64,000 nt of DNA from Guillardia theta CCMP2712 (Eukaryota; Protista; Cryptophyta). This document shows, in pieces, positions 7,681 through 22,100 of the stretch. The stretch is from assembly GCF_000315625.1 (NCBI RefSeq), contig NW_005434663.1:186001-250000 (forward strand). Direction: 5' to 3'. The notes under the pieces were generated by a model that ran no database searches, was not told the origin of the DNA, and saw nothing but the letters and a program-made list of their open reading frames with translations. Numbering within the stretch: the stretch's first letter is position 1; each line of letters opens with the position of its first letter. The translations under genes and the position numbers were made by a program.

Positions 7681-8215
7681 TTATGTCAGTGGGAAGAGGC
7701 TAGAGCGATCGAGGGAAGCGAGGAGAAGGCGGAGGAGAGAGGGAGACCATGGCCATGAAGTCAGAGGATGCGATGCTTGTTTGGAGGAGAAACAGTGAGC
7801 GCAAGAAGCAGCAACAGCACGTGTGGACGATGAATGAAGGGGTTTGGATGGCAAAGGAGGTGTACGTGCTTAGTGTGTAAGGAATCGTTGAGGATGGGCT
7901 TACAATCAGGACCAACAAGAATGGTGAAGATTGTTTGATTGAATGAACAATGCGTGAGCGGCTCAAAGGAGGTGTCGAGGAACGGGACGAGGAGGTGTAT
8001 CTCGTAGAGGCGTAGAGGCGATTTTCACGTCACCAGTGGCCAGTGGAGCAATCAGTGGTGGCGCTAGCAAGAGAATGTGTGAAAGATGACAGAGCGAAGT
8101 TCGATGAAAGTGATGAAATGGTGGTTGTCAACACAGCACACATCGACGTAGCTGTAGCCCGTAGTCTTTCATGCTTGTTCTTGTTTACTCGATCGTTGTA
8201 ACATACTTGTGTCAG

Positions 8216-9795
8216 ATGTGGAAGGCTACGGTTGTTGCCTCGTGCCTCGCATCGGCACAGGTTGTCTCTTCCTTCCAGTTCACTCCTTCTCTCTCTCATG
8301 CTCGTCTCGGCTCCTCCCCTTCCATGTGCTCGAGCAGGAAGGTGAGGTCCGTTGGTCGCCTCCAGCCGAAGATGGTGGCATCGGCTCCATCCAGCGCTCA
8401 GGTCCCAGCAGAGGAGCAGTGGGTGTTGAACCTTGACTACGAAGGGTTCCGCCGAGAAGTGGCAGACTTGGGCAAGGAGCTGGAGCAGAACCAGGGAGCT
8501 GAAGACGTTGCTCACTTGAAGAAGATCTGCCTGTGGTCGGACATCTGCGCGGTTGTCGGGCTGGCGACCATGTGGTTGCCGCTCAACCCGATCTCGGTGA
8601 TCGCGCTTTCCCTCTGGAAGTTTTCGCGCTGGACGACCATCGCTCACCACACCGGACACGGAGGATACAACAGGGCGGACGAGACCAAGTTCTTCAACTC
8701 CCGCGGGTTCGCGACTGGCTCGCTCTTTAAGCGAGTGACACAGTGGTTTGACTGGATGCTGCCCGAGGCGTGGAACATCGAGCACAACAACCTCCACCAC
8801 TACCGTCTCGGAGAGCGAGACGACCCCGACCTCGTGGAGAGGAACATGCACTTCATCAGGGAGCTTAAGGTGCCTTCAGCGCTCAAGTACATGGTCGTTG
8901 GTTTCTTGATGTGCACCTGGAAGTGGTTCTACTACGCCCCCAACACTTACAAGGAGCTCAAGATCGCCGAGATGCGCAAGGCAGGCAAGGCGATCACCTC
9001 CGACATGAAGGCAACTGACGCGTACACGCTCAAGTCGTACCTGGACCCTGCCTTTGGGGTTGAAACCTTCCAGTGGTACTCGTTCATGGACCTGTTCAAG
9101 AACGTCATCGGCCCCTACCTCATCCTCCACTTCTTTGTTATGCCTCTCCCCTGCCTCCTCATCAGCCAGCAAGCGTACGTGAACGCTCTCATCAGCCTCG
9201 CCTTGGCGGATGTGCTCACCAACATCCACTCGTTCATCGTGATCGCTACCAACCATGCGGGCAGCGACCTGTACAAGTTTGATGACGGATGCAAGCCCAA
9301 CTCCGCGACCTTCTTCATGCGCCAGGTCGTGTCCTCGACCAACTTCAAGACCGGAAGCGACTTCAACGACTTCATGCACGGGTGGTTGAACTACCAGATC
9401 GAGCATCACGTATGGCCGAACCTCAGCGCTCTGAGCTACCAGCGAGGACAAGCCAGGCTCAAGGCCATCTGCGACAAGTACGGGGTCCCCTACGTGCAGG
9501 AGAGCGTCTGGATCCGCCTCAGGAAGACAGTTGACATCATGGTCGGCAAGGCGAACCAGCGCCAGTTCCCTTCCTCCCTCGAGCGCCAGTCGGACCTCAA
9601 GGTGAAAAGAGAGGAAAAGGAGATGAAGGAAAGAGGAAGGGGAAGAGGGGGAGCGATGACGAGGAGAGAGAAGGGGGAAGGGAAGGCACAGTCAGGAAGA
9701 GATGTTGACATGCGCTGCAGGTGTGGAGCAACGAGGACATCGCGGAGAACAGCGCGAAACTCGGACAAGATGTCAAATTGAAGCCTGCTGTTTAA
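8216..9795 (+). CDS. Plastid-targeted membrane-bound fatty acid desaturase family protein (three His boxes, no cytochrome b5 domain)
   Basis: His boxes HHTGH, HNNLHH, QIEHH; leader MWKATVVASCLASAQVVSS-FQF (signal peptide + Phe) then Ser/Arg-rich transit peptide; single intron 9602-9720 gives C-terminus VWSNEDIAENSAKLGQDVKLKPAV*. Confidence 0.9.
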
Positions 9796-9957: not shown

Positions 9958-11300
9958 TCATCGCCCTGCTTTTTCAACCTTACGCAACCATCCCTGTCAC
10001 CAGCGTCAGCCCTGCGATCAAGATCTTCCGCACGCACATCAACAGTTGCGAGGAAGCGACGCGGGTCCTCTAGGTGTGCCATGTGGCTCAAACCCGCAAG
10101 CTCCGCGTACTCTGCACGTTCGATGCCCTCGACGAAAGGAGCAACGAGTTCCTGCAGAGCAGTGTAAAGAGAGAGCTGGAAAAGGGAGAGGAGGAGGGCA
10201 GGTAGAGGAGAAGGTAATGAAGAACCTTGGAGATGTAGTCATGCTCTCCTCGCATCACCAGCGCAGGAAGATTCCTCGGCCACTTGCTCTCAAGATCCTT
10301 CTGGTCGATCCGAAAGTCCCCAACCTCAACCATCTCAATCAGTCGAGCACCTTCGAGCTCCACCGCTCACAGAGGTTGCGCCTCGCCACACGACACCGAG
10401 GTGGCAGAAGGCCTCCTGCAGGCAGAGAGGAGAAGACTTGAGGCGCAGGTTGTGCATGGTCGTGAACTTGTCGTTGGCCACCTGCCGAACGCCTTGAGCA
10501 TCAGGGAGAGCAGAGACAAAACTCACCTGCAGCTTCCATTGCTCAACCCAATCCTTCTCGCGGGGCCAGTCAGGCCTCATCCCAAGCTCGTCAGGTGAGA
10601 GCCCGTCAAGCTCCCTCTTGTACTCGTCGATGATCTTCGTCGCTCGTTCCTGCGACTCAGCAGGAGACGCGGGAGAGCTCGCGAGAATGACAGACTTGAG
10701 GCCTGAAAGGAGCTTCGGGTGGTGGGCCAGGTGACGCATCACCACCTCTGCTGCCAAGCATCCTCCCCAGCTGTGACCCAAGAGGTGGAACCCACCTGCC
10801 TCCAGGAGGCCATGGAACTCAGCGAAGTGACTGAGCATGGTCGCCGCGTCCTCCGCGCTTTGCCGCACTGAGTAGAACTCCTCCTCCTCAGGCTCGTCAG
10901 ACCTTCCACATCCCAGCTGATCGTAGAAGAACACGCTCCTGCCCCCCATCTGATTCAGCCCCTCCAGCGGTTCCAGGTAGTGCGAGGGAACTCCCGGCCC
11001 CCCGTGCAGGACCACAACAGGCAGAGCCGACGAGCGATCGTCCGCCGCCTTGCTGACTCCATACCATATGGAATAGCCTCTCACTCGCAAACTGCCTTCT
11101 TCCTTCATCTCCAGACTCCGTTTGATAGCGCTTTTTGCTCTTTGTCGCATCAGCATGGTGTTGACTTTGAAACATCCTGCTCGCAATCCGCCACAAGTCC
11201 CCATGAAGGCAAACATGCCGGGAGAGACGCGGCTCGTCCTCGTTTCTCCATCCGCCAACAGAAACAAGCTCAGCAGGGACAGGAGCCTTGTCGATCGCAT
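9958..11300 (-). CDS. Proline iminopeptidase-like alpha/beta hydrolase with N-terminal targeting leader
   Basis: HGGPG oxyanion motif, YDQLGCGRS, nucleophile elbow GHSWGG, 'RGEHD' Asp and 'SHMAHLE' His in downstream exons; hydrophobic N-terminus. Confidence 0.85.
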
Positions 11301-14304: not shown

Positions 14305-16570
14305 TTAATGTTCACCGAGAGAAGCCATAAACTCATCGATCGACTTCAAGAATGCAGTGCGAGCTCGCGGCTTCAGCTCCATGCTTGTGCACAGGTCGTC
14401 GACTTCTTCGGTATTCTTTGACAGCACGTGCTCCACAAGCTTGTCGACGATGGCTCGAGGCTTCTGGAACTCCTTGCTTTCATGCTCGAAGAGACGATCT
14501 AGCTTTCCCTCGCCCGCAGCCAACAGGCTGACGATGATCTCGCTGAACTGGCGAGGAGATCCCCAGCTCTGATGCATCGCTGCATGCCATGCGCGAGCGC
14601 GAGCTCGCTGCTTCTCGGCCTGGGAGGAGTCAGGGAGGGAGGGGGGAGGGGGGAACTTGCTGTGGAGCACCTGAGGAGAGCGATCGTCCCTGGGCAAGTC
14701 AGCGATCTGCGACAACTCGAAGCGAAGGCGGGAGGCGACCTAGCGCAGGGTGAGCCCAGCACGTCAAATGTCCTCCAGTCTCACCTGCCGCATCGCCATG
14801 GAGTTGGGGACTGCCAAGTTGTCAGCTCCTATGCCGACCCTGGCGACAGAGCTGGCAGGGTCGATGGGAGGGCTGGCGAGAGTCAGTCAGCGAACGAGGA
14901 GGAGGAGAAGCGTCTCACCGTATCCCCTGCTCGAGCATCTTCTCGCTGAGAATGATCTGACCGTCAGAGAGGGAGATAAGCTCCTCTATGTGCTTCAGCT
15001 TGAACTGAACTTCTTGCGCCTATGAGATTACGAGCATGTCACGTCACTTTCAGCTGGCAAGCAGCACGTACTGAAGCTCCAGGGGAGGGGATGCCCAACT
15101 TTCCGAGCACTTCCTCCGTTATCGCTATCCCCTTGTCCTCCATCAGCTGGATCCTAGCTCTCACCTGCTCGCAGTCAGTCCCACACCTCCAGCTCGAGCG
15201 CTCTTGCGCCACCTTGGAGCCATAGAGCGAGGGGTCGAAGTCGCTCATGGTGAACTTCTTCCCCTTGTCGCCGCTGCCTATCCGGGGACGATCGACGAGG
15301 AGGAGCATGGAGAGCGAGCCTCCGCCGGCCTGATTGTTCAGATACCCGACGCGCTGAAACAAGGAGGAGTAGAAGGCCCGCATCTCTGAGTTGGCGGCGG
15401 CGATGGCCGAGCTGCTGTTTGCAAGCGTTTCTAATCCGACCTCCTGCAGGATGCTTCGCTCCGTCTGATCCCAGAATTTCTTGTGCTCCTCTAGGTCATC
15501 AACAACCACCAGCGTGTCCTTCCCTTTCCTTCTCCAGTAGTCCGCGATCGAAGTTCCTGCTGCTGCTGCTGCCACACACACGCTGGGGTCGACGGCTCCC
15601 TGTGAGGGCTCTACAGCAACGATGATCGAGTTCTTCAACGCTCCCTTCTGCTTCAGCGCGTCGCTCACTTCCTTCTCCTTCCCGTTCGTCACGACGTACA
15701 CAACGATCGTCCCCTCCTGCGCCTGTTTGCTCGCCGCGTCGATCGCGAGCTCTCGCCTGCCCAGGTCGAGGCCTCCCACCACCAGCATGTTCTGACCCTT
15801 CCCTATCGGCACCAGCGAGTCGACTGCTGTGATGCCGGTGTGCATCGGCTTCGAGATGGTCGCCATGTCTGCTTGTGCGGTGCTTGCCCCGAACATCAGG
15901 ACATCATCTCCATTGCTCGCTTCGCCTCCTCCAAGTATTCTGTCGGAGACGTCAAGGAAGGAGATAGAGAAGAGCCTCTGCTGTACCTGCCCTGGAAGTC
16001 GATCGTCTTCCCCAAGAGCGTCTCGTCTACCTTCAGCGTCGAGTTCTGGTTGATGACCGTTGCGCTCGTTTCCTCCAGCTCTCCTGCGGTCTGGGAAACC
16101 TTCAGCGCGAAGACGAAAGGGAATCTCTGCCACAAGACGATTCCTTCCTCCTTCTCGCCGAGTTTCACTTTCATCCCCTGGAAGTTGGCAGAGCTCACGC
16201 CCTCTGCTGTCAAGCCGCATCGCAGAACCACCATCCTGCCTACCTCGCCGAGGACCTGCGAGGAAACAGCCGACATGTCCGAACTCTTGTGAGACTGCAG
16301 CGAGGTCGCAGACATCTTTACGATCTTTGCTATGTCGTCGTTGCTGTGCATGAAGCGCGTTGCTCCTGTCGCTGCCCTCCTGTTGCTCACGCATCCCCGG
16401 TCGCTCCAGTAGCCTCGCACCGACCTGATGGCTTGAGTCCTGCTCAGCTCCAAATTTCTGAGCATGAGGAGAGGCGACGGATGCATGTGGAAGGAGAAAC
16501 CGAAGGCATGTGAGCGCGAGGCAAGTAAGATCATCACTGTAGCCGTCAACCGCTTGGCGACCACCTGCAT
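14305..16570 (-). CDS. Nuclear-encoded, plastid-targeted F1-ATPase alpha-subunit-like protein with degenerate Walker A
   Basis: PMHTGITAVDSLVPIGKGQNMLVVGGLDLGRR (cf. AtpA [29 protein letters not shown]), LVVVDDL, GGGSLS, LISLSDGQIIL, RPPIDPASSVARVG; leader MQVVAKRLTATVMILLASRSHA-FGF. Confidence 0.85.
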
Positions 16571-17067
16571 GCTGGCCTGCCGACATGTCAGACGGAAAAC
16601 GTTAGAACAAGGACATAGCAAAGCTTCTTGTCTGTTTGAATGCTTACACAATTGATCCTGCTCCACAAGTCTGCACTTTCATATTCACACTAATGTTCCC
16701 TTTCACAGCTCCCTCTTCTTCAAATATCCTTCCCATCGCTGCATGGTGACCTGCTACCTGCGCAAACCCGTTGCCTGCTCGCTTCCTAGCCTTATCATAA
16801 GTTACTTGTATGCCGTTCTCCTTCTCCTTCTCATCTTTCTCCTCTTCCTCTCATCATCCATTTCCTCTTCTCCTCTTCTCTCCTCCATGGTTGCCCGTCC
16901 CCCTCCCTCTCTCTCCTCGTCTCCTCCTTGGCCTCCCTTCCTCCATTTTCCCTGCCACTGGTACCCACCCGTCTACTCCCCCTTACCACCCCCACCGTTC
17001 CCATTGCACCGGAATCCAGAAGATCGGCGCAAATGCGATGGGAGCGAAAGGAGGAAGGGAAGAAGAA

Positions 17068-17470
17068 GAGGTGAGGGATAGTGGGGAGAGGAAGAAGAGG
17101 AGGTGAGGGATAGGGAGCAGAGGAAGAAGAAGAGGTGAGGGATAGGGAGCAGAGGAAGAAGAGAAGGTGAGGGATAGGGAGCAGAGGAAGAAGAAGAGGT
17201 GAGGGATAGGGAGCAGAGGAAGAAGAAGAGGTGAGGGATAGGGAGCAGAGGAAGAAGAGAAGGTGAGGGATAGGGAGGATAGGAAGAAGAAGAGGTGAGG
17301 GATAGGGAGGATAGGAAGAAGAAGAGGTGAGGGATAGGGAGCAGAGGAAGAAGAAGAGGTGAGGGATAGGGAGCAGAGGAAGAAGAAGAGGTGAGGGATA
17401 GGGAGCAGAGGAAGAAGAGAAGGTGAGGGATAGGGAGGAGAGGAAGAAGAGAAGGTGAGGGATAGGGAAG
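17068..17470. repeat. Purine-rich minisatellite, ~31-32 bp unit (GAGGTGAGGGATAGGGAGCAGAGGAAGAAGAA), ~12-13 copies
   Basis: Tandem copies read directly; explains spurious ORF 16831-17655. Confidence 0.92.
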
Positions 17471-17632
17471 GGAGGAGGGAGTGAACGGATTATTGATAAG
17501 ACAGACAGGGAGATGAGAGCAGGGAAAGAGAGTCGCAAGACCAGGTAAGAGAAGATCTCGAGGAGAGGGAGAGAGAAAGAGAGGAAGGTGACACGAGATG
17601 GGTAAGAGAAATGGACGCGAGAGAATCGAATG

Positions 17633-18946
17633 TTAAGTTTCACTGCTACGTTCACTGTCTGGAGGTGGAGGGGCAGGAGGGGCAGGAGGGGCAGTAGGGG
17701 CAGGAGGAGGGGGTTCGGCGGATTCTTGCTGGACTTGTTTCAAGATCCTCATGATGTGATACTGCATGACTGGTTGTCCTCTGCTCGTCTTGGCGTTGAG
17801 CTTCCTCCTCCACTTGCTGCGAGTTTCCTTCGCCTGCGGGTCGTAGGTCAATCGAACAGATGAAGCAATACAGAATAAAGTAGGAGCAAGCTCTGGCTGA
17901 AGCAACAGCGTTACCTTTGCTTTTCTTGACTCAATCTCTTGCCTTCTGTGCTCTTTTTCTCGTCTCGCTGCTTCTTTCTCCTGCATCTTCTTGTCGTACT
18001 TGTCCATCCAACATGACTTCTTGGTCTGATTTCGTCTGGGATCAACCATGGCGCTTAGGTTTGCAAGAGGAGCTGCAGCTATCGTCTCTTTGCGCTCCAT
18101 CACATCAGGAGCGCCGCTGCTCTTTCCTTGGTCGATCGCCTTTGAGAAGTTGAAATGAATCTCTTCCAGATCTGAGAATTCATTTTGGAGCGGCATCCCA
18201 CACAAGGTGGGGATCTTGCGAGGAGGAGCCTTGTCTTGTTGAGCTGGAGCAAACCTGCTGTTGATGTCCTTCCTCGCTCTTGCTATGATCCGCTTCTTCC
18301 ACTTCTCCGCTCGCGCTTCATGCAGCTTCTTGTTCTTCCAGTTTCTCTGCTGCTTGATCCCCCTGGCATTCACTACTGGAACCTTCCTGCGGATCGTCTC
18401 GCCCATCGTCTTGTAATCTTCTTCCTGCTCAGCGACAACCTTCAGAGTGCGGGGATCTTCTCGGAACCTCCTCATCTTAGCGATGGGAGGAATGATTCTT
18501 CTCTTTCTCTCCCCGTCATGAACTCTCAGGACGGGCTTCTTCTTCTTCTTCTTCTTCTCCTTCTTCTTCTTCCATTTTTCTTCTTTTCGCCGGTCGAAAT
18601 CCTCTCTCGTTATCCCTTCGATGACTTCACCGCCGGACCCTCCTCTGATCCTCAGAAGCAGTTCTCGGATGCAGACACATTCATCTAGCTTTGTTCTTTC
18701 ATCGAATCGCCGCCGAAGAGAGGGAAGATTGCATGCATTAGAACCTGATGAGGAGAGACAGACGTGCGGTGGGAGCGTAGAGAGTAGAGGAAGGAGAAGG
18801 AGCCGAGGACAAAGAAATTTGAGGTGAGAAGGTGAGGTAACTGGTAGACAGAACGAAGGTAGAGGGAGCAGGAGGAGGAGGAGAAGGAGGAGGAGGAGAG
18901 GAGGAGTAGAGGGTGAGAGTTGAGGGGCAATGCAGCGACGCTGCAT
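17633..18946 (-). CDS. Basic protein with C-terminal Fyv7/TAP26-like rRNA-processing motif and N-terminal signal peptide + LRIRGG
   Basis: C-terminal KWRRKLNAKTSRGQPVMQYHIMRILKQV resembles the Fyv7/CCDC59 signature; Lys-rich NLS-like stretches; poly-Leu signal peptide; probable in-frame intron ~17833-17914. Confidence 0.6.
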   Translation of the reverse strand: MQRRCIAPQLSPSTPPLLLLLLLLLLLPLPSFCLPVTSPSHLKFLCPRLLLLPLLSTLPPHVCLSSSGSNACNLPSLRRRFDERTKLDECVCIRELLLRIRGGSGGEVIEGITREDFDRRKEEKWKKKKEKKKKKKKPVLRVHDGERKRRIIPPIAKMRRFREDPRTLKVVAEQEEDYKTMGETIRRKVPVVNARGIKQQRNWKNKKLHEARAEKWKKRIIARARKDINSRFAPAQQDKAPPRKIPTLCGMPLQNEFSDLEEIHFNFSKAIDQGKSSGAPDVMERKETIAAAPLANLSAMVDPRRNQTKKSCWMDKYDKKMQEKEAARREKEHRRQEIESRKAKVTLLLQPELAPTLFCIASSVRLTYDPQAKETRSKWRRKLNAKTSRGQPVMQYHIMRILKQVQQESAEPPPPAPTAPPAPPAPPPPDSERSSET

Positions 18947-19124: not shown

Positions 19125-22100
19125 ATGCACGCTTGGATGAGATGGGCGCCCTCCCCCTCCTGCATCCCCTCTTCACAGCCCTCATCTTCCGCTGCTCCCA
19201 ATGCTGAAGCTACGTCCGCTGCGGGCAGTGGCAGCCATAGCGTCAGAAGGACAAGTCGCCAAGCTGCCCGAGATCTGCTGAGGAAGGTGGAGGGAGGGAC
19301 TCCTCTACAGTCACAGCAGCTGTTAGATGACCTTGAGAACCTTGCGGGTGTTCTATCAGAGGGTGTTGACTCTTCGCAGGAGGAGGAGCAGGAGTCAAGC
19401 ATGCACATGTTCGACGACGCTCGTACGGTCAACATGATCGACTCATTCGTAGCCGAGCTTGAGCAGTATGATACGGACAAGTCAAAGTCAAGCGAGGACT
19501 TCGAGGGATTCCAGCGAATACAAATAGCGAGATGGAACTTAGAGGCAGAGCTCGACAAATCGCGTGGAGTGCTGGAGAGGAGGAGGTACGTTCGGCGACG
19601 GATGAAGCTGCTTATGTGTGGAAATTTGGGGGAAGACTACGAGGACGAGGACGACTGCGACAGACCAAGATGGAAGAGCTTTCCTGAACTTGAAGGGAGT
19701 GAGATCCGCTCGCTCTGCTCGTGTGGTCAGAATGTGGGAGTCATCACGGAAGCTGGCGACATCTTCACCTGGGGAGCCAACAACTTTGGTCAGGTCGGAA
19801 TCGCTCCCGAGGACGAGGACGAAGCAGCCCACGTCTGCTCTCCCTGTAAGCTTCCTCAGCTCCGCTCTGGTCTCCTCCGCAACGGACCGCCCAGGCAGCC
19901 GGCACAGCTTGCCGTCGGCCGGGGTCACATGGCGTGCGTGACAACGACGGGGGAGCTGTTCACTTGGGGGTGTAACGACCATGGGCAGCTGGGGAGAGAC
20001 TCGAGCTACAAGTCTACACGTCAAAGAGACCAGGTGGGGACAGTGATGCGCCGACACTTGTTTTCTGAGCTCCCCTCCGAACTGTCGATCAAGAACGCGT
20101 TCTCTGCCGCGCCGGGGCATGCTCTCGACGCCTCCTATCGGGCTACCCAGGTAGCCTGCGGGAGCGATTGGACGTGTGTGGTTCTCGAGGAGGAAGGAGT
20201 GTTTCATGCACAGACAGGCAGGAGTATGCTGCTCTCCTTCGGGAGGAACGACAAGGGTCAGTGCGGGCATGGGCACAGCAGTCAGCGAGCAGACATGGCC
20301 TTCGTCAAGCTCAGTGGCGTCGTCCGGACCCTCGCATGCGGCGAAGGCCACACGATCTGTGTGTGCTGGGGCGACGAGGTCTATGCATGGGGAGCGAACG
20401 AGTGCGGTCAGCTGGGGATCGGGATCCAAGGGGGGGAGCATGGTCACCTGGCGGGTCTTGTGAGCGCGTCGGGAATAGGAGAGGATTGGATCGCAGAGCC
20501 GTGCAGGGTCGAGAGTCTTTGCGGCAGGCGATGCGTCATGGTGGCTGCTGGGCTCTTCCACTCTGCTGCCTTGGTGAGCTCCCGCGTGACTTGAGTTCTA
20601 GCTGAGCAAACTGCTGGGCAGGTGCTGGGAGGGACGGTGTGGACCTGGGGGGACAACACATACTGTCAGCTGGGCGTGAGGGCGAGGGCTGGTGGCTCAC
20701 CGTTAGAGTCACAGACGTTTCCAGAGCCGCAGGTGGTGGAGAGCATCGTCGATCAGGCCGTTTGCTTCCTCTCCTGCGGTGACTTTCACACGGCAGCGAC
20801 AACCCTTGGCGGCATGATGTTGACTTGGGGCAAGAAGCTCGAGGTCCGCGCAGCCGGGGCCGGGAAGTACTTCTCTTGTGATGCCGAGGTCGCCTGGAAC
20901 TCGGGGGAGAAACAGCATGCGTTGGCTGACGGGAGCATGGGGACCCTCTGGTGCTGTCAGACTTCCTGCGGGGAGGAGCACACAATCATGCTGGTGGTGG
21001 AGGCTGCGGACGCGCGGAAGGAGCCAACTGAAGTTTGGGAGCTGCGGCAGGAGATTGAGCAGGACGACGAGTCGCTCGTGACGCGATCGCAGGCACTGAC
21101 TGGCCTCTCCTTGATCTTACGCGTGCTCCTCAACCTGGAGATCATGTTGACCCGTCCGCTGAGGTACTTGGCTCCTGCTCTTGTTGCCATGTCCTTCTCA
21201 TGCCTGGCAGACGATCGTTAGAGTCGGTGTACCCGATCCTAGAAGAGAGCGAGCTACAAGGTCTCCTCCCCTTCCCTCCCCTTCCCTCCCCTCGCTCCCC
21301 TCCCCTCCTTTCTCCTCCTCTCTCCTCTCTTTCTCTCTCACTTCTCCTGCGCTCTCGGCTTGTTCCGTCCACTTGTGCACCCTTCCCGGTCGATAATCGG
21401 GTCTTCCGCCAGGTGTGATAGGACGAGATGGTTTGGCTAGCAGGGCGAGGGAGCACGTGGAGGTTTGAGGGCGCGAGGCCTTGAGACGTTTTGACTCACC
21501 GGAGACTTCAGCTCGTCTTGGAGCAGCTGGTGAGCAGCTGGGAGAGAGGGCTGCCCAACGTGACGCTGAAGGACATATTGGGTTTGTCATACTCGAGAGC
21601 TCTCGCTGCGTCTCATCGAGTCTCTGCAGTCCGCGAGCACGAAGGCTTCCAGTCGTTGGTGAAATTCCTCGACAACTGCCCAGCTCAGCTCCTGGCGATG
21701 AGGTCCGACTCGCCTCTTCCTTCCCCTCGTGACCTCCTGTGCAGGAGAGCGTTGAAGAAGCTCCGGTTCGCTAAGTTCGCTGATGATGCCGGGAAGGAGC
21801 TGGTTGCCTCGGGTTCCTCCCTCCCTCCGCTGCTGCAGAACCTGACAGGCTGCAGGCACCTGGTCCATCCTCCGACACCCATGGGGCAGGCTCTTCACGC
21901 TGGATCAGACCCCTTCCGTCCTCCAGGAGCTCGAAGCTCCTTCTGGTCTCTGTGCTGTCTGTGAGCAGGTGACGTTCTTGACTCCTTCCCCCGAGCTAAC
22001 CACGCCCTTCAGCCTCTCGCCATGCTCGCAGGCAGCGGAGGAGCTCATGGTCGTTGCAGCATCGCGCTGAGCAGCAGGATGTCTGCTGCTCGGGTTGCTC

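Follow-up and report, generated by a model that had tools for sequence, protein, structure and literature searches.

A nuclear-encoded, leader-bearing F1-alpha paralogue of Guillardia theta with a degenerate P-loop and a retained arginine finger

The cryptophyte Guillardia theta CCMP2712 encodes, on the minus strand of a 64,000-nucleotide stretch of contig NW_005434663.1 (positions 186,001 to 250,000; this whole stretch is referred to as the window, and all coordinates are given in its numbering), a diverged paralogue of the alpha subunit of F1 ATP synthase, an identity that we hold with high confidence. The protein, termed pseudo-alpha, combines a degenerate P-loop with a retained arginine finger and represents a leader-bearing family with members in cryptophytes, diatoms and a haptophyte. 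Based on its sequence features we tentatively propose, at somewhat less than an even chance, that pseudo-alpha may act as a non-catalytic alpha mimic binding the plastid AtpB, either in the assembly or quality control of the chloroplast F1 head (CF1) or as a regulator.

The first-pass annotation of the window, made from the letters alone, had described a full-length F1-alpha-like protein, and profile as well as structure comparisons bear out this description. Exon 2 of the gene matched PF00006 in Pfam with E=7e-20, and the best sequence matches in the PDB were all F1 alpha chains, with an E-value of ~1e-22 for exons 2-3 alone, and a profile built from the family scored the PDB alpha chains at 235-308 bits. 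Among the NCBIfam models, those for alpha ranked at the top for the orthologue P0001, yielding 201.7 bits (cut-off 554) and 165.8 bits (cut-off 484.45), compared to 42 bits for beta. G. theta exon 2 scored 115.1 bits against NF009884 (cut-off 554), and neither P0001 nor this exon reached the cut-off of the atpA equivalog (TIGR00962 / NF009884). The V/A-ATPase B-type model gave only 61 bits, and the models for FliI and type III secretion ATPases remained at or below 85 bits versus cut-offs of 380-715, besides the loss of the intact Walker A motif.

The structure was predicted for P0001 as a stand-in for the joined G. theta protein, using an 80-row family alignment that included three G. theta exon translations. 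The resulting AlphaFold (AF2) model reached a predicted local distance difference test score (pLDDT) of 93.8 and a predicted template modelling score of 0.93, with the insertion described below modelled confidently, and comprises a crown barrel, a nucleotide-binding domain and a C-terminal helical bundle, which together amount to a predicted full three-domain alpha fold. The best 50 PDB matches of this model in Foldseek were all F-type ATP synthase entries, with template modelling (TM) scores by target of 0.72-0.83 and identities of 21-24%; the assignment to the alpha chain is apparent from chain letter and length, the table being without subunit names. Searching the ESM Atlas by shape returned matching clusters named ATP synthase subunit alpha, and searching it by features returned generic alpha/beta-family clusters only. 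Taken together, the protein has the fold and the ancestry of an F1 alpha subunit and lies outside the atpA equivalog family.

The nucleotide site and the catalytic face of this fold have fared differently. As the first-pass annotation had noted, the Walker A motif is replaced by GGLDLGRR and the arginine finger survives as ARVG (Table 1). The P-loop is degenerate throughout the plastid-type subfamily and this region is poorly conserved within it, save for an Arg at the former Thr position. At that position (15758-15753; P0001 residue 173) Arg is found in at least 90% of the plastid-type members while the rest of the loop varies, and this Arg might fill the empty phosphate/Mg pocket. The arginine finger is nearly invariant, at least 90% of family members having the Arg. 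Conservation within the plastid-type subfamily peaks in two blocks, namely P0001 residues 263-326, which comprise the rewritten pocket, and residues 385-435, which comprise SDGQI, RPxxD and the arginine finger and make up, in F1, the face that alpha contributes to its catalytic interface with beta. In canonical F1, alpha Arg373 and the loop with alpha Ser344 are the contributions of alpha to the catalytic site of beta. Within the pocket segment, the canonical sequence RRPPGREAYPGD gives way to a stretch that is specific to the family and contains an SSEMR motif and a Trp found in all members, the segment being about 10 residues longer than in canonical alpha.

The GGGS motif (15326-15315) is followed by a long family-specific insertion. 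With the intron discussed below removed, the span from GGGS to DGQ counts 78 residues in G. theta versus about 21-22 in canonical alpha, corresponding to a net insertion of ~57 residues in the loop that links the GGGS strand to the helix preceding DGQ. In bovine F1 the loop so replaced carries alpha Ser344, and in canonical alpha it lies at the catalytic alpha/beta interface. The insertion is without counterpart in canonical alphas, which leave profile positions 356-421 unmatched, and its conserved core consists of an aromatic residue, DF, an invariant Arg and the motif GI.LT...L.K[IL].IP.P (alignments A1 and A4). It is predicted to contain two confidently modelled helices (P0001 residues 352-363 and 370-376), and it folded poorly when modelled alone (pLDDT 65). 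Thus, the long insertion reported at the first pass is present, whereas 16 of the residues then counted to it most likely belong to an intron.

A HMMER search with exons 2-3 yielded 1916 proteins at E<=1e-3, and inspection for motifs revealed that about 100 of the 150 listed representatives carry both the insertion and a PIG[KR]GQNML motif. Orthologues in ochrophytes and haptophytes, for which a search had been suggested at the first pass, were found in diatoms (Chaetoceros, Stephanopyxis, Aulacoseira, Attheya, Pseudo-nitzschia and Cylindrotheca) and in at least one haptophyte, Diacronema lutheri, alongside the cryptophytes Geminigera cryophila and Baffinella frigidus. Starting from one diatom member, 232 clusters were obtained at E<=1e-30. 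Several members stem from transcriptomes of the Marine Microbial Eukaryote Transcriptome Sequencing Project (MMETSP), and the gene is therefore transcribed in those species. The G. theta protein shares 52% identity with P0001 over the aligned exons, and about 34-38% over the exon 2 region with the group containing the diatom members. The ratio of non-synonymous to synonymous substitution rates (dN/dS) among three cryptophyte orthologues was 0.058-0.078 in pairwise comparisons, far below 1, and the family is under strong purifying selection in cryptophytes.

In trees with the G. theta mitochondrial beta as outgroup, the family forms one clade apart from the canonical bacterial alphas, with support from the Shimodaira–Hasegawa-like approximate likelihood ratio test (SH-aLRT) of 98 under a mixture model and 97 with FastTree, and the G. 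theta protein falls inside the cryptophyte clade. When a collection of bacterial and archaeal genomes was scanned by pattern, no counterpart of the family emerged: all hits were canonical alphas that lack the insertion and share 25-38% identity. The first-pass annotation had called the protein a paralogue of AtpA; its descent from F1 alpha holds, and its derivation from plastid atpA is not supported, because the family profile scores chloroplast alpha (257 bits), mitochondrial alphas (235-260 bits) and bacterial alphas (242-308 bits) alike. On these scores the family has no special affinity to either chloroplast or mitochondrial alpha, and a plastid origin is not visible. As a side observation, three proteins (P0123, P0175 and P0198) form a small alpha-like clade with the motif PxGKGQ[SA].L..GE.G.GKT and N-termini resembling mitochondrial presequences, which branches next to the canonical alphas but outside them, and is likewise separate from the family with the insertion. 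Database names of family members are automatic and read "F0F1-type ATP synthase alpha subunit", "ATP synthase alpha subunit" or "hypothetical protein", and full-text searching of the published literature did not retrieve any description of a pseudo-alpha family.

The leader was read by inspection of the sequence. Residues 1-22 (16570-16505) end in SHA and are followed by Phe (codon 16504-16502) and a Ser/Thr/Arg-rich stretch, so that the SHA-F junction reported at the first pass (16570-16502) is recovered. Many full-length plastid-type members likewise begin with a hydrophobic signal peptide ending in a small residue and followed by F, W or Y, as in SHA|F, ASG|F, AVA|Y, VQA|F, SQA|W and VHA|F, and this plastid form is common to the orthologue leaders. 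An aromatic residue at position +1 of the transit peptide is the hallmark of stromal, not periplastidial, proteins in cryptophytes and ochrophytes, and the G. theta leader appears to conform to the bipartite, aromatic +1 type of the stroma-targeted proteins of these algae.

To delineate the complement of alpha/beta-type genes, the whole G. theta assembly was searched in six frames with PF00006, yielding four loci: mitochondrial beta (contig C7), V-ATPase A (C63), V-ATPase B (C95) and the pseudo-alpha gene. This search detected neither a beta-like paralogue nor a canonical alpha of the nuclear genome in the assembly. The plastid alpha is organelle-encoded, and the lack of a canonical alpha among the nuclear loci fits organelle-encoded alphas in both organelles.

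From these features a mechanism can be outlined. The bipartite leader, consisting of signal peptide, Phe at +1 and a hydroxylated and basic transit peptide, would direct pseudo-alpha to the plastid stroma. The protein itself would be unable to bind or hydrolyse ATP, and because a dead P-loop is paired with a nearly invariant arginine finger, the nucleotide contacted would be expected to sit on another subunit, with the conserved arginine-finger face docking onto a P-loop partner. Since no beta-like paralogue was found in G. theta and the arginine-finger face is best conserved, this partner would be the plastid-encoded AtpB, the sole alpha/beta-type candidate in the stroma. Retention of the full crown domain suggests ring-type contacts. 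Pseudo-alpha would then be a non-catalytic mimic of alpha that takes part in the assembly or quality control of CF1, or that regulates beta, whether free or already assembled. It would probably not be an ordinary, stator-bound alpha: an N-terminal helix is not conserved and the interface is occupied by a large insertion, both of which disfavour a regular place in the mature stator-bound head.

Several observations weigh against this assignment to AtpB and CF1. Stromal targeting of the G. theta protein is itself deduced from the leader sequence; the N-terminal helix by which canonical alpha binds delta seems to be missing, because sequence conservation is lacking ahead of the barrel (alignment A3 and the subfamily alignment; residues 1-17 of the P0001 model have low pLDDT); the insertion, placed at the catalytic-interface loop, might obstruct beta just as well as clamp it; and the retention of the arginine might have structural reasons. 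Furthermore, a sister group shares the insertion and the arginine finger, and its full-length members keep a Walker A motif of the form GxxGxGK[ST], with most of its proteins having no plastid leader and beginning either directly with the barrel or with a short N-terminus rich in Arg and Leu. This group (P0138, P0106, P0137, P0120, P0092, P0139 and P0250-P0262; loci L009, L010 and L093) consists mainly of environmental sequences, on contigs that are gene-dense, GC-rich and equipped with eukaryotic genes (FUT8, HDAC, exostosin). Its only named relative is a 443-aa fragment of Emiliania huxleyi (P0263, EMIHUDRAFT_200488), in which a motif search did not find the Walker A region. Since the sister group keeps the P-loop, the loss of this loop is derived within the family; the ancestral protein probably worked with a nucleotide bound, and possibly elsewhere in the cell. 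With relatives that are leaderless and keep the P-loop, the ancestral role therefore need not concern CF1, and the family may function without CF1 beta. One protein of the P-loop-keeping clade, P0256 (935 aa), is called as a fusion with PF10294 (Methyltransf_16, lysine methyltransferase), which may be genuine or may reflect the merging of two adjacent genes.

The same relatives, which lie outside any obvious CF1 context, are in line with a possible, if doubtful, alternative, in which pseudo-alpha would be an alpha-derived scaffold independent of ATP synthase, self-associating or engaging a non-F1 partner through the insertion and recruited to another plastid process. The insertion and P0001 residues 263-326 are family-specific and highly conserved, and affinity to chloroplast alpha is lacking, in keeping with such a scaffold; mycoplasma F1-like ATPases, reportedly recruited to gliding and to the MIB-MIP system, offer a precedent (PMC3369863, PMC12994834). 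However, a homo-oligomer with dead P-loops would leave the nearly invariant arginine finger without a nucleotide, the crown domain and the beta-facing motifs have all been retained, and no result points to an alternative partner. These retained elements, namely the full three-domain alpha fold with its crown and the arginine finger with the DGQ face, would also be expected of an alternative alpha isoform that replaces AtpA in some CF1 heads, as would a loss confined to alpha's own nucleotide site. Replacement would remove one or more non-catalytic sites, with the consequence that ATP would still be made while reverse running would stall in MgADP inhibition, guarding against dark hydrolysis where gamma is without a thiol switch. 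Thermophilic F1 devoid of non-catalytic sites reportedly loses sustained hydrolysis and keeps ATP synthesis. We nevertheless regard such an isoform as quite unlikely, given that no N-terminal helix for binding delta and the peripheral stalk is conserved, that the ~57-residue insertion at the catalytic interface is accompanied by ~10 extra residues in the pocket segment, that the scores fall far under the atpA equivalog cut-offs, and that pseudo-alpha is not named in the excerpts of proteomics text consulted.

Residence in another compartment (the periplastidial space, the lumen of the endoplasmic reticulum or the mitochondrion), where the protein would never meet CF1, is decidedly improbable: targeting is read from motifs only and some distant members have N-termini resembling mitochondrial presequences, but the +1 residue, F in G. 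theta and F, W or Y in the orthologues, is the stromal mark. That the gene is a decaying relic or a gene-prediction artefact without function is hardly credible in view of an open frame intact over 7 exons with canonical splice sites, 52% identity to orthologues found in transcriptomes, a dN/dS of about 0.07 in the cryptophyte clade and family-specific motifs that are nearly invariant from cryptophytes to diatoms. Returning to a partnership with AtpB, a more far-reaching and unlikely version would be a second alpha/beta-type assembly in red-origin plastids, in which pseudo-alpha and AtpB would join via the arginine-finger face and the insertion, either as a hydrolysis-proof CF1 variant or as a separate soluble alpha'-beta ATPase or ATP-sensing module outside ATP synthesis, with the leaderless relatives that keep the P-loop representing the ancestral nucleotide-binding form in another compartment.

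The coordinates underlying this analysis are collected in Table 1. The minus-strand gene is the single gene within its boundaries, with the first in-frame ATG at 16570-16568 and a TAA stop codon at 14307-14305. A gene model, termed model C, was built by reading of the sequence, frame checks, splice signals and alignment of homologues, and predicts 7 exons and 6 introns with a coding sequence of 1977 nt for 658 aa plus stop. The introns measure 45-52 nt, comprising introns of 47, 52, 46, 45 and 51 nt and the 48-nt in-frame intron, and this number of introns agrees with the earlier view of a nuclear intron-rich gene as opposed to an insert of organellar DNA. Exon 1 aligns to P0001 residues 3-109, modelled by AF2 as strands of the barrel, a domain that Pfam by itself missed in this exon. 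Exon 3 corresponds to the two insertion helices of the AF2 model. For the C-terminal domain the PF00306 match in Pfam was weak (E=0.22), and the alignment of the family profile extends over residues 341-506 at the C-terminal end of alpha.

The interval 15212-15165 is most likely a 48-nt in-frame intron. This reading was adopted because the 16 residues that would be translated from it are lacking in all homologues aligned; because, once the interval is removed, exons 2 and 3 abut on P0001, the former reaching residue 353 and the latter starting from residue 354; and because P0067, a fragment from a close relative (85% identical over the aligned part), diverges and ends exactly at this junction. 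Two other models were rejected, model A with a 145-nt intron (15164-15020), as it removes a block that the orthologues conserve, and model B without an intron at 15212-15165, as it keeps the 16 residues that they lack.

Table 1. Features of the pseudo-alpha gene in the window
Feature	Position	Strand	Remarks
Whole gene	14305..16570	-	All introns GT..AG; exons collinear with orthologues P0001, P0009 and P0005
Exons of model C	16570-15987, 15939-15213, 15164-15072, 15019-14919, 14872-14785, 14739-14671, 14619-14305	-	
Exon 1	15987..16570	-	Signal peptide, Ser/Thr/Arg-rich transit-peptide-like stretch, N-terminal beta-barrel (crown) domain
Exon 2	15213..15939	-	Linker, core of the nucleotide-binding domain, start of the family-specific insertion; 58% identity to P0001
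Degenerate Walker A GGLDLGRR (canonical alpha GDRQTGKT)	15753..15776	-	Lys and Thr both replaced by Arg
Probable in-frame intron, 48 nt (GTGGCG..GCGAGCAG)	15165..15212	-	GT..AG; size class of the other introns
Exon 3	15072..15164	-	Conserved core of the insertion; invariant Arg and GI..T...L.KL.IP.P motif
Exon 4	14919..15019	-	Helix before the SDGQI motif and SDGQI itself; within P0001 385-435, the best-conserved block of the subfamily
Exon 5	14785..14872	-	RPPID and SSVARVG; arginine-finger codon AGG at 14841-14839
Exons 6 and 7	14739-14671 and 14619-14305	-	51-nt intron between them; C-terminal helical domain and stop codon

The neighbouring open reading frames encode a fatty-acid desaturase (8171-9781, plus strand), an alpha/beta-hydrolase (10335-11300, minus strand) and an RCC1-repeat protein (19125-20594, plus strand), which are functionally unrelated to the alpha-like gene. 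About 500 bp upstream of the gene start, a 32-bp unit is repeated 12.8 times with 94% match (17058-17468) and occurs also at 16816-16870, overlapping a low-complexity, Ser/Pro/Leu-rich open reading frame on the minus strand (16831-17655); this repeat may be a promoter-proximal satellite or a repeat-encoded low-complexity coding sequence.

Diatoms, haptophytes and cryptophytes account for a large share of ocean photosynthesis. To our knowledge, CF1 assembly and the control of ATP waste in the dark are poorly known in these algae, whose gamma is without the thiol switch of green plants. With its occurrence in all three lineages, its leader, strong purifying selection among the cryptophyte orthologues compared, a lost nucleotide site and a retained face for completing the catalytic site of beta, the pseudo-alpha family is a candidate for this gap. 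Automatic labels reading "ATP synthase alpha subunit" can mislead both the annotation of these genes and metatranscriptome counts of ATP synthase. The diatom orthologues belong to a group with genetically tractable model species, which would render the function testable once an orthologue is identified there.

Compared with canonical AtpA (TIGR00962, NF009884), pseudo-alpha has the same three-domain fold (Foldseek TM by target ~0.8) and has the motifs PIG.GQ, DDL, GGGS, DGQI, RP..D and S.xR.G with the arginine finger in common, but is only 21-24% identical in structural alignments, with a destroyed Walker A and a rewritten pocket segment. It further differs in its ~57-residue insertion, the lack of a conserved N-terminal helix, its nuclear gene and its bipartite plastid leader. 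With the B subunit of V/A-ATPases it shares the nature of a non-catalytic superfamily member; this subunit is placed in alternation with a catalytic one and, in eukaryotes, has a degenerate P-loop itself. The similarity is, however, much weaker (61 bits), and the V-ATPase B of G. theta is a separate gene on contig C95. The nearest parallel described so far is provided by the alpha-like subunits of mycoplasma F1-like ATPases (Type 2/3 clusters; MSC_0619 and MMOB1660, the latter of the gliding G1-ATPase), which are reportedly diverged alpha paralogues existing beside a genuine F1Fo and recruited to a different task (PMC3369863). Models of these subunits score P0001 at comparable levels, namely 125 and 112 bits. 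In contrast to the G. theta gene, for which no beta-like paralogue was detected in the assembly, the mycoplasma subunits are reported to be clustered with their own beta-like partner and gamma- and epsilon-like genes (PMC3369863), and the insertion carried by the algal family is a different one. The F1/CF1 chaperones Atp11, Atp12, BFA1 and BFA3/CGLD11 (PMC7607909) resemble pseudo-alpha by functional inference, in the proposed occupation of a free beta or alpha interface until the proper neighbour arrives. Whereas these chaperones have small, unrelated folds and no homology to it, pseudo-alpha would mimic the true neighbour itself.

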